A stretch of DNA of 63,383 bases, filler included, from Reticulomyxa filosa (lineage: Eukaryota; Protista; Foraminifera): the NCBI GenBank assembly GCA_000512085.1. It is 20 parts of 20 records of this genome, joined end to end, with 100 filler letters (N's around TTAATTAATTAA, not from the genome) between each part and the next. Parts side by side here need not be neighbours in the genome. Positions count along the whole stretch, not along the records: positions 57,008 to 60,643 come from ASPP01010247.1; 19 more parts are not named here. The stretch is one strand, 5' to 3'. A program made the position numbers and the translations under genes. The notes under the pieces were generated by a model, which searched no databases, had not been told where the DNA came from, and worked only from the letters and a program-made list of their open reading frames with translations. Of this stretch, positions 57,008 to 60,643 are shown piece after piece; the first letter of the stretch is position 1; the number at the start of each line of letters is the position of its first letter.

Positions 57008-57045
<38 letters not shown>

Positions 57046-57048
57046 AAC

Positions 57049-58214
57049 TTGAGTTCCCGCAAAAAAGCATCCCCCTCTTAATCGAAGGACGAGACAGATA
57101 ATATGGCCTGTTTGAAGTTTGTAATCGGCAATCGTGTGATTGTCCTTCATTTCAATACCAAAAACCATAAGTCTCTGTTGTTCTACAGGGATGCCTTCCT
57201 TATCGGTGACTTTCATTTTGACCTCCATAATGGTAGTGGCCGGGAGCACAAAGACAGAAAAGACTTTGTTGGTCAATGTCTTGACGATAAGCTCGATCAT
57301 TTTGCTTTGGTCCGGAAGCACAGGCACTTGAATTATTGCAACGACATTTTGCTGCTTTTCTTTGTTTGTCATTTCACCCTCTGTCTTTTTTTCGTCGCTG
57401 CTGTCCGCTTTGCGATGTTCGGCTAGTCGTTGTCCCAAAAAATCGGCCTTTGCTCCGTGCTTGTTGAAAAACAACCTTTGATTGCGATGCAAGATCAACT
57501 GTGCTGATGTACCCTTGCTTGTGCTCACAATGGTCAATACCGACGGTGATGTCGGACATGCCTGATAATTGAAAATGGATACGTTGAAAGGAAGCTCCTG
57601 GCTATCGCCGGTGGATATGGGCAACATACAACACTGTGCTGACATAATCACGTGTGTGTCTTCTTTTTCATTCAGCAAGTTCATTTCCACTCGTTTGCTC
57701 GATTGGTCGTCCTTCATTGTATACGTCATGTAATCTTGGAAATTCTTCAAATAGTCACTTAGAGTTATTGTCTTAAATGTCTCCTTTTTGCTACTGCCTG
57801 GCTCTAGTAATTGCTCATTTCCTACCACCAAAGGGATCTTTTCCATTCTCACGTCCCAAGTCTTGTCACTGAAATTCGAGTATCGGATCACTGGCATCCT
57901 TGTCTTGTCCACTTGCAATGTCATGTCCGATATGTTTGGTCCCCAACACGATTTCTTGTTTCTTGCCGTGTCTTCCCATGACACGTTCACAATATCTAGA
58001 CCAGCCTTGATCGCACATTGTTTGGCTGTTGATGAACCTGTTCAATTTGGGCCACATGTGCGTATGTTGTTGTTGTTTTTTTTTTTTGAGCGTTCGTGCG
58101 TGCAAGTTCCTCGCTGTTCCTGAACCCTGCTTTTGCTATTTACTCACTTGAGGCCATTTTTTTTACAAGATCAACAACATCTTGTTGGGATTTATCTTTA
58201 GGATTCTCAGCCAT
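57049..58214 (-). CDS. Unassigned-domain / ubiquitin-like / putative Hint (intein-like) fusion protein, 3'-partial
   Basis: Exon 1 MAENPKDKSQQDVVDLVKKMAS, GT-AG intron, then a long exon: VNVSWEDTARNKKSCWGPNISDMTL...VAIIQVP, a 76-aa Ubl (57070-57297) ending LRLRGG, then CFFAGTQ before a GT + poly-T intron start and the contig end. Confidence 0.85.
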
Positions 58215-58565
58215 TTCAATCCTTGGAATAAATATTCAAAAAAGAGTGCAACTAACAAAACAAAGGATTCCTTGTACAAAGAACCTGTTCCAAGTTCACT
58301 GAGTCGGGTTTGAACTACTTTTTTTAGACCGCAGGGTCGTTTTAAAAAGATCTTTTGCAAGTGCTACTGATATGGAACTTCAATTCAAAAAAAATTGGCA
58401 TCCTGAACCAATTGAATATTTGAAAAATTCATAGAATGACAGAGGACAAACCCCATTTCACAGAAAGCTGGGCAATCAACAATTATTTGCTTTATAAAAT
58501 TGAAAAAAAGGCCATGTCTTTCAAAAGTATCAATTGTCTTGAAGCTTTTCAAATTAAAAATTCTA

Positions 58566-59154
58566 TTAATCACTTTCTTTCAAAGTGGCAAGGATTTCGT
58601 GTTCTCGTAATAATATATATTCCTATTCAGACCAGCCATGCAAGTAAACAGCTTTGTTTTTTTTTTGGCCTATTCTCTTTTATACACGCTCACAATTTTA
58701 TTGTAAAAAATGACTCCCAAAACAATATAGACTTGATGAACTGTTACCTCATCATTCTGTTTAAATTCAATTCCACCAAATTGTGGCAGAACCACCTTGT
58801 CGCCTACTTTCAATGCCATTTGAATATTTTTTCCTTGGTCATTTCTTCCGCCAGGTCCAACTGCTACAATTGTTCCCTTTTTTCAAAAAAATTGTGGTCG
58901 AGTGTAAGAAATTTCCAGAAATTCGATATTTTGTTAAAAAAAAAAAAAGCAGAGCAACTTGAGACAGATCTTGGGACTTTGCAGAATCAGGCAAATACAA
59001 TCCTCCGGATGTTTTTTTTGGTGCAGGGATTTTTTGCACCAGAACACGATCAAACAATGGTTTTATTCGTTTAGCCAGTAGTTGTGCCTATTGAATCATC
59101 ATTACGATCTTCATTCCAGAGGACATCACAGAAAATGAAAAAACACTTCACCAT
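58566..59154 (-). CDS. HSPE1: 10 kDa chaperonin (Cpn10/HSP10), four exons, intact
   Basis: M|AQLLAKRIKPLFDRVLVQKIPAPKKTSGGLYLPDSAKSQDLSQ|GTIVAVGPGGRNDQGKNIQMALKVGDKVVLPQFGGIEFKQNDE|EYILLREHEILATLKESD*. Confidence 0.93.
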
Positions 59155-60031
59155 TTTTTGGATAGGTATAGAATAATAGGCTGGAAGGATGCAAAAATGG
59201 AAGAATTAAAGAATTTTTAGACGTTCAGCAATTACTCCCTTTCTGTTAGTACCAGTTCGTGAAACAACCAAAGATATTTTGCACACAATACTTCATGTCT
59301 ATGTTTAAATAAAAAATGAATCCTATATACAATACAAAAACTAGCTCTTTGGCAATATTAGTAACAATAAAAATTGTCTTGTAATACAATGATATTATTG
59401 CTTACTTATATGACAACATGTGTACCATAATCCATACTTGGATGATTCAAATTTTGAAGATAAAAACATTAAGGTGACATACTATTTTTTAGATACATTC
59501 TTATATTTGATCACGTTGTCTTGAACGTAATATAGTGCGCAGAAAAAAAAACATATATCAATGCCAGCACTATGTACAAACATAATAATCAAATTAGACT
59601 AAAAAAACTAATACAATCTGAATTTCAATAAAAATCAAATACAAATAAGTTCGAAGTGTAAACTGAATCAATCAGGATATGATTCCACAATATGTGCTAG
59701 TAAATGATTTCTACTGATTTTATTCATACTGTTGATAAACAATTTTTTAATTTTCTAAGGCAAAGAAATTTAGAAAGTTGAGAAAACAAATTGCAATTAA
59801 TTAATCTACTAAAAACCGATCAAGTATCATTTGTAAAATTCCAACTCATTAGAGGTTAATTACCTTAACATCTCTTCAGCGTTGTTTGATGTTTGTCTTG
59901 ATCCAATTTGTGGTTTATTGAATTTACCTGTGAAACTTCTTTTGTCCTTTAAAAAAAGCGTACACTCGAAGCCACTTTAAAAAAGTTCTTGGTGTTGAAA
60001 AAAATCCCTAAGTTCTCCAAGGAAAAAAGAT

Positions 60032-60643
60032 ATGACAGCAGAGCGCATAGTTAATAAATATTGGGGCACATTGATTCGCATTATATCAGCTCCTAGACAT
60101 TCATTTCGACTTTTTCTGATGTTATTCATAGTAGGAGCGTTAAGTTTGTCGTTTCTTTCGCTGGTAAACGAGGGCGGTTGGTTTTTTTCATCAGCAAGTG
60201 ATGCCGAAAGACAAAGAGGTGATTTGGAAGTGCAGGACAAGCCCGACGTCTTAGACCTTCAAAGAGAGCTAGAATACGTGCAATGGAAGTACTTGACATC
60301 CAGAGTCGCTCGAAAAGCTAAGAGTTATAACAAGCTCGCAAAGAAAGAGGAATTGGAAACACATTTGACAGAGACAGCCTTTTTTAATGCAAGTCGAATG
60401 CAAAGTTATGAAGACAAAATTGCACAAAGAAGGAAAAATAGTTATCGAAGCCAAAAAGTCAGAGACCGTCCATTGTTGACAATCACTCCGTCTAATGCAG
60501 ACAATGAGTACAAAGATTGGAAGACAGTGCATCAAATGTGGGAGCAGTTATTTGTCGAGTATATTGTTTCCAGAGCCAATGACGCCACTGTCAACAACGA
60601 TATTAATGGACCACAACACAATAAAAAGAGGAGGAGGAGGAGG
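60032..60643 (+). CDS. Hypothetical type II membrane protein, 3'-partial
   Basis: Open frame of ~200 codons with one TM helix (LFLMLFIVGALSLSFLSLV) followed by a charged stem. Confidence 0.6.

Follow-up and report, generated by a model that had tools for sequence, protein, structure and literature searches.

Evidence for a cassette of ubiquitin-like and intein-like Hint domains within a conserved protein of the foraminifer Reticulomyxa filosa

Genes in which ubiquitin-like (Ubl) domains are combined with intein-like domains have so far been described only in ciliates, where the BUBL loci encode polyproteins of Ubls and bacterial intein-like (BIL) domains (Dassa, Yanai & Pietrokovski 2004; Chiarini et al. 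2021, as cited in PMC8616854). ATP- and E1-independent Ubl conjugation via an intein-like domain has rested on this one system. BIL2 passes its upstream Ubl, independently of ATP and by way of an isopeptide bond, to a lysine in the Ubl that follows it or in another protein (PMC8616854). Type A BILs end in His-Asn, lack a nucleophile at the +1 position, ligate via a freed amine and for the most part undergo cleavage (PMC4031507). Here we analyse RFI_14112, a gene of the foraminifer Reticulomyxa filosa (assembly GCA_000512085.1) in which a Ubl ending in Gly-Gly runs directly into the first residues of a putative Hint domain. The gene lies on the minus strand of a 3636-bp contig, positions 57008-60643 of the window, the window being the whole 63,383-nt stretch of DNA that was analysed. 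Judged from sequence, it extends the pairing of a Ubl with an intein-like domain from ciliates to a foraminifer.

Translation of the minus strand from 57049 to 58035 gave an open exon with the end ...HIICLVLRLRGGCFFAGTQ, and the NCBI partial model of the gene (ETO23072.1, P0001, 352 aa) stops at the same last Gln. Residues M269-G345 matched the Pfam ubiquitin family PF00240 (E=2.8e-20; 72.3 bits against a cut-off of 25.4; profile positions 2-72 of 72), and BLASTP alignment to a ubiquitin repeat gave 37 identities over 76 residues with no gaps, the count at which an initial annotation, working from the DNA alone, had already arrived for a gap-free 76-aa Ubl with an LRLRGG end. The replacements which it had listed, Ile for K48 and Thr for K63 with K6, K11, K27, K29 and K33 retained, were borne out in the alignment to ubiquitin, and translation confirmed its central observation, a Cys codon (57067-57069) placed right after LRLRGG and followed by FFAGTQ. 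Beyond Gln352 (57049-57051) the sequence reads gtttct and then about 36 T to the edge of the piece at 57008, with no stop codon between CFFAGTQ and this edge, and no other GT between the Cys codon and the gtttct donor; gttt-type donors are used elsewhere in the same R. filosa gene family. The Gly-Gly of the Ubl directly precedes the Cys in the paralogous contigs L001 and L008 as in the window (LRLAGG-C in L001, LRLRGG-C in the other two). CFFAGTQ was unchanged in L001, with three synonymous and no non-synonymous differences, and was followed there by gtttat and poly-T, while L008 reads CFFAGTR and then a GT...AG intron. Because L001 keeps these residues with synonymous changes only and L008 has CFFAGTR, the stretch is coding sequence and not intron or untranslated region. 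The initial annotation had also allowed that the splice donor might lie upstream of the Cys; in the window, L001 and L008 alike, the donor lies after it.

That CFFAGT continues into a Hint domain was shown in L008, a contig of 3183 bp which encodes P0363 (RFI_34707) and is 74.7% identical to the window at the DNA level over 1266 nt. This one contig carries the N-terminal domain (N-domain), the Ubl with ...LRLRGG, CFFAGTR, a 123-nt T-rich GT-AG intron and then a Hint domain of the form VTISEKDTKTIEEVKIGDAIMSYN...TTTVNHP. P0363 scored 75 bits against the Pfam ubiquitin family and 35.1 bits against Hint (PF01079; cut-off 29.7), and position 1 of the Hom_end_hint profile fell on its Cys356. The T-x-x-H motif, which had been predicted for a point some 65-75 residues past the Cys, was found at Hint positions T67-x-x-H70, directly in P0363 and likewise when the seven residues of the window were placed before P0359.

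The C-terminal end of the Hint domain came from a profile search with the C-terminal domain (C-domain) of the host family described below, which returned R. filosa RFI_39747 (contig L003). This contig opens in mid-reading frame with ...VFAVYVASSNENMFANGVLVHN, directly followed by GSEPEQ..., an intein-type C-terminus which scored 14.5 bits against NCBIfam TIGR01443 (intein_Cterm), under the cut-off of 15.6; a partial match to NCBIfam intein_Nterm was also obtained (E=5e-4). The isolated short C-terminal fragment had no Pfam and no PDB match. A further three R. filosa proteins came from an exhaustive search with the L003 exon, which also gave one unrelated low-complexity match (E=6e-4). P0359 (contig L005) and the near-identical P0362 (contig L007) start VSVNEKETKAIEEIAIGDAVMSYN...TTTVNHPIF...NMFANGVLVHN and continue with GSGEVDLEPVIIKV. 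Their Hint exon (VSVNEKETKAIEEIAIGDAV start) directly follows a poly-T tract and an AG acceptor, and P0362 runs on through a ZZ-like finger, the C-domain and a SAM-like tail to a stop codon. P0359 scored 33.1 bits against Pfam Hint (cut-off 29.7) and 30.4 bits against Intein_splicing, below the cut-off of 35.8, over profile positions 6-155 of 155; with this coverage, the L005/L007 exon lacks only the residues which the window supplies. No C-domain exon was found within 1.5 kb downstream on L005, although the near-identical L007 has one, and its absence is probably a misassembly at homopolymers.

The Hint domain is 156 aa long with a VHN end, and NMFANGVLVHN followed by Gly (+1) and Ser (+2) was invariant in five of five copies (L003, L004, L005, L006 and L007), in keeping with the terminal His-Asn/Gln that had been foreseen. 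Cys1, the T-x-x-H motif and the terminal His-Asn were kept in every copy spanning them, and the order after the Hint is Gly-Ser, linker, ZZ-like finger, family C-domain and SAM-like tail. The ratio of non-synonymous to synonymous substitution rates (dN/dS) of the Hint was 0.04-0.09, with dS above 0.69, lower than that of the Ubl (0.3-0.6) and similar to that of the N-domain (0.10, window against paralog L002), which indicates that the Hint is under strong purifying selection. Thus the proposal of a Hint-like continuation, originally made from seven residues, is supported by the paralogs. A downstream exon encoding the family C-domain without a Hint was also considered, and was ruled out by the Hint sequence on L003, L005/L007 and L008.

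Searches with the whole protein were dominated by polyubiquitin, and it was the N-terminal 262 residues alone, used as query, which exposed the host family. At least 734 homologues of the N-domain were found at E<=0.01, and the family matched no Pfam, NCBIfam or PADLOC model. The N-domain carries the motifs SWEDxARxKxSxWGPxISDMTL, VGNE, NYQ and IQVP; full-length members consist of the N-domain, a variable insert and a C-domain with ...AIVKVG..FEE..ERDxRFPIRVTLQYYKAT..IGSLV..RPTE, and the N and C motifs were both present in 84 of the 117 non-R. filosa proteins among the best 120 of the 734 matches. Polar residues invariant in the family (window 57319-58214; P0121-P0237) are, in the numbering of homologue P0182, W32, D34, R37, D49, N66, D69, N85, Q129, Y150, Q226 and R369. 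Members occur in protist transcriptomes, Balamuthia, fungi such as Umbelopsis, bacterial metagenome-assembled genomes and a giant-virus-like contig, and some are fused to CUE, ZZ, SAM or Ubl domains. The homologue of another foraminifer, Elphidium margaritaceum (P0136), has no Ubl-Hint cassette. Since the C-half of this family lies downstream of the Hint in R. filosa, the Ubl-Hint cassette is, like an intein, embedded in a host protein. The initial annotation had described a cargo domain of about 270 aa before the Ubl; the domain is indeed present, and is the N-half of a family whose C-half lies beyond the Hint.

P0182 carries a Ubl at the same linker, reading ...YRLRGG-GGPNPIEMAMIHVG (RLRGGGGPNP), and has no Hint. 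Its Ubl is 68% identical to ubiquitin and that of R. filosa 49%, while the two are 39% identical to each other; as each is nearer to ubiquitin than to the other, they may be independent captures. An AlphaFold2 model of P0182 (predicted local distance difference test, pLDDT, 84; predicted template modelling score, pTM, 0.78) gave confident N and C halves placed relative to each other. Foldseek returned no PDB structure at E<=0.001 for this model, a wider structure search (VIA) gave a best Z of 4.7 for an MSP-like beta-sandwich, which is not meaningful, and an Atlas shape search matched unnamed viral clusters only. An actinoporin/aegerolysin-like relationship proposed by the Atlas feature search (0.81-0.84) was rejected, the scores being at chance level. 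The P0182 contig (Logan, SRR31012006, 11.5 kb) holds densely packed small genes, and an AEP_C962R-type primase, of the type found in nucleocytoplasmic large DNA viruses, and an AP2-domain gene adjoin that of P0182, which suggests a Nucleocytoviricota genome.

The intron after Hint codon 7 opens with a long poly-T in three paralogs (window 57008-57048, L001 5863-5911 and L008 2758-2860), and this run ended the assembly in two of the three, which is why the database has one 'partial' protein for the Ubl part and another for the Hint part. We infer that the exon of the window continues into a Hint exon in the same way as that of L008. Among the contigs with the N-terminal part, the window is the outgroup, with 72-75% identity against 80-95% among the rest; among the Hint contigs, the outgroup is L005/L007, with 67-74% against 77-81% among the rest. 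This matching divergence would pair the window contig with the L005/L007 Hint lineage, a pairing that is suggested and not proven. One contig, L004, carries the N-domain, Hint, ZZ and C-domain together, as an internally deleted copy. In L004 (1-1034; ASPP01037429) the deletion fuses the N-domain (...FNISLYNYQ) to the middle of the Hint (..IGDAVISYNCK..), and the copy lacks the remainder of the N-domain together with the Ubl and Cys1; its C-domain is incomplete as well, and it is probably a pseudogene.

The model which we favour, and which we consider likely to be correct, is that RFI_14112 is the 5' part of a gene encoding, in this order, the N-half of the host family, the Ubl, a type A BIL-like Hint, Gly-Ser, a ZZ-like finger, the C-half and a SAM-like tail, and that its Hint would be processed in the manner of type A BILs and BIL2. 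Several observations weigh against this model. There was no sequence overlap between the window contig and any Hint-bearing contig. On L007, the poly-T beside the Hint exon is preceded by unrelated sequence, and the intron must hold at least two T-runs; given this second, different tract, what links the two parts is paralogy and congruent divergence. Frameshifts in homopolymer runs (L001 and L007) and the internal deletion of L004 mean that some copies may be pseudogenes, or that the assembly may contain errors. The AlphaFold2 model of the Hint, made from five R. filosa copies, had a pLDDT of 32.7, which leaves the sequence profiles as the support for the fold. In addition, the accessory block F (around ...VFAVYVAS.N[KE]NMF...) is by eye not the canonical Asp/His, making the efficiency of each processing step uncertain. 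As to the frameshifts themselves, they are single-base changes at about 5480-5660 of L001 and about 940 of L007, within otherwise conserved frames; the NCBI models bypass them by artificial introns or truncations (RFI_06655, RFI_21501), and they represent either sequencing errors or early decay.

By analogy with type A BILs and BIL2, an N-S acyl shift at Cys346 would convert the Gly345-Cys346 bond into a Ubl-Gly-Gly thioester, and cyclisation of the terminal Asn would cut the bond between His-Asn and Gly. Such a thioester, formed without E1 or ATP, would agree with the chemistry reported for BIL2, the closest solved relative (PMC8616854). It could then be hydrolysed, splitting the host protein in two; it could be attacked by the freed amine of Gly+1 or by a nearby Lys of its own C-half, giving ligation in cis; or it could be attacked by a lysine of another protein, giving E1-independent conjugation of the 345-aa N-domain-Ubl. 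As the C-half of the host family follows the Hint, conjugation to other proteins appears no more likely than cleavage of the host or its ligation to that C-half. The two flanks belong to a single protein, and in homologues both halves are modelled together in a compact unit; for this reason we regard the cis outcomes (cleavage or self-ligation) as somewhat more likely than conjugation in trans. That Foraminifera possess E1/E2/E3-independent conjugation, with lysines of other proteins, or lipids, receiving the 345-aa N-domain-Ubl from its thioester, is in our view rather unlikely. Were it true, targets would carry an entire folded domain, attached by an isopeptide bond of the ubiquitin type, and R. 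filosa would represent a second, independent eukaryotic lineage after the ciliates, with a much larger payload.

The strongest alternative to the favoured model is that the Hint is a selfish or neutral insertion which excises itself and rejoins the Ubl-Gly-Gly to Gly-Ser, leaving a contiguous host protein with an internal Ubl and no conjugation in trans. The cassette does sit in a variable linker, with homologues that lack it, including that of Elphidium; the YRLRGG junction of P0182 resembles the expected spliced product; the N and C halves are modelled in that protein as one confident unit; and type A BILs can ligate via the freed +1 amine (PMC4031507). However, every copy has Gly at +1, which leaves no Cys, Ser or Thr to form a branched intermediate, and cleavage products outweigh splicing in type A BILs (PMC4031507). 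Moreover, the Ubl of P0182 and that of R. filosa both resemble ubiquitin more than they do each other, so that P0182 does not necessarily represent this insertion minus its Hint. We consider self-excision unlikely. It is improbable that the cassette is an inactive relic, whether an uncleaved chain in which Ubl and Hint serve as spacer domains or a gene family decaying as a whole. The frameshifts, the deletion in L004 and the non-canonical residues of block F would all fit decay, but Cys1, the T-x-x-H motif and the terminal His-Asn are retained in every copy covering them, the dN/dS of the Hint is below that of the Ubl, and homopolymer runs, where the frameshifts sit, are typical sites of sequencing error. 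Finally, that RFI_14112 itself has no Hint, CFFAGTQ being a short extension of a Ubl precursor or leading to an unrelated exon while only the paralogs carry the domain, would fit a contig which ends 41 nt past the Gln codon with nothing visible downstream, but is very improbable given the open frame up to the contig edge, the retention in L001 and L008 of the seven-codon stretch, the intron position and the T-rich intron start (L008 leading into a Hint), the requirement of the family for a C-half, which lies downstream of the Hint on every recovered R. filosa contig reaching upstream (L003, L004, L006 and L007), and the existence of a Hint/C-half lineage of matching divergence with no known 5' part.

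The features of RFI_14112 are collected in Table 1. The reading of exon 1 agrees with the NCBI model and with the corresponding exon of three paralogs (L001, L002 and L008). Upstream of the gene, on the same strand, lies a chaperonin-10 (GroES/Cpn10) gene at 58550-59130 with two short GT-AG introns, the middle exon of which (58751-58876) matched Pfam Cpn10 (E=1.5e-10). An open reading frame of more than 200 aa on the plus strand (60032-60643) runs past the edge of the piece and has no Pfam match; by eye, it has a hydrophobic segment near its N-terminus and a charged, coiled-coil-like body.

Table 1. Features of RFI_14112, in window coordinates
Feature	Position	Strand	Remarks
Exon 1 of RFI_14112	58148..58214	-	encodes MAENPKDKSQQDVVDLVKKMAS plus 1 nt; ATG at 58212-58214; donor gtgagt at 58147
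Intron 1	58038..58147	-	GT...AG, 110 nt; frame open from 58037, directly past the acceptor AG
Exon 2	57049..58037	-	open frame, followed by gtttct donor
N-domain, residues 23-262	57319..58037	-	N-terminal half of conserved two-part family without Pfam model
Ubiquitin-like domain, M269-G345, LRLRGG end	57070..57300	-	Pfam PF00240 and ubiquitin alignment
First seven Hint/BIL codons (block A start), Cys346-Phe-Phe-Ala-Gly-Thr-Gln	57049..57069	-	predicted scissile bond between Gly345 and Cys346
Intron 2 start	57008..57048	-	donor gtttct, then poly-T run to contig end

That a rhizarian has a Ubl-Hint cassette in several copies, and under purifying selection, shows that the junction of Ubl-Gly-Gly with the Cys of a Hint is not peculiar to ciliates. 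The cassette offers a natural example with a large folded domain as its N-extein and, as its C-extein, the second half of that protein, and would lend itself to testing what determines whether such a junction is cleaved, is ligated in the absence of a side-chain nucleophile or undergoes isopeptide transfer. The cassette could also yield a new self-activating Ubl-thioester tool. The analysis further brought out a large family which has neither a Pfam model nor a fold match, in which fusions to ubiquitin-related modules (Ubl, CUE and ZZ) recur, and which deserves study in its own right. In full-text literature searches, no paper was found that connects Reticulomyxa to inteins or to Hint domains, and scans of IMG/VR and JGI metagenome contigs with the Hint gave no credible relatives, three metagenome loci being pattern artefacts.

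Hint was the top Pfam family (PF01079, above its cut-off) and is shared with the Hedgehog/Hog proteins, as would be the first step, the N-S acyl shift. In contrast to these, the R. filosa domain ends in His-Asn, as inteins do, and lacks a sterol-recognition region, and its N-terminal product is not a Hedge signalling domain. With class 1 inteins it shares the in-frame insertion into a host whose homologues lack the insert, the block A Cys, the block B T-x-x-H and the terminal His-Asn. It differs from them in its Gly at +1, which makes canonical transesterification impossible, in having no homing endonuclease, and in its insertion in a variable linker rather than in a conserved active-site motif; its score against Intein_splicing likewise falls below the cut-off, as given above. 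The spacing of CFFAGTQ joined to VSVNEKETKAIEEIAIGDAV is, residue for residue, presumably that of the start of the yeast VMA intein. The fit is with the definition of type A BILs (PMC4031507; e.g. 2LWY), in that the predicted domain has Cys1, the block B His, a C-terminal His-Asn and, with Gly at +1, no Cys, Ser or Thr at that position. Whereas type A BILs are found in bacterial secreted or variable proteins, the R. filosa Hint is eukaryotic and intron-interrupted, has a Ubl as its N-flank and lies in a conserved protein of cytosolic type.

The best sequence match of the Hint to a solved structure was BIL2 of Tetrahymena BUBL1 (6Y75/6TMM; E=7e-4, residues 3-148, nearly the full length), followed among Hint-type structures by 2LWY (E=0.04-0.09) and then Hedgehog 1AT0 (E about 0.9). 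In BUBL1 BIL2, as in R. filosa, the Gly-Gly of a Ubl stands directly before Cys1 of an intein-like Hint; the block B His is H69 in BIL2 and H70 in R. filosa, and the region near the C-terminus reads ...FFANGVLAH in the solved BIL2 chain and ...MFANGVLVHN in R. filosa. The BUBL1 product also has a non-Ubl domain, the deposited chains being named NAD(P)(+)--arginine ADP-ribosyltransferase. BIL2, however, has Ubls on both sides (ubl4/ubl5) in a polyubiquitin-like locus, and its acceptor is a lysine of the downstream Ubl, whereas in R. filosa Pfam found no ubiquitin domain, and hence no second Ubl of the BUBL type, in the C-flank of the Hint. There, a single Ubl-Hint cassette is followed by Gly-Ser, a ZZ-like finger and the C-half of an unrelated conserved protein, and the host is a rhizarian and not a ciliate. 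What is new in R. filosa is thus the other eukaryotic supergroup, the single cassette and its intein-like placement within an unrelated conserved protein.

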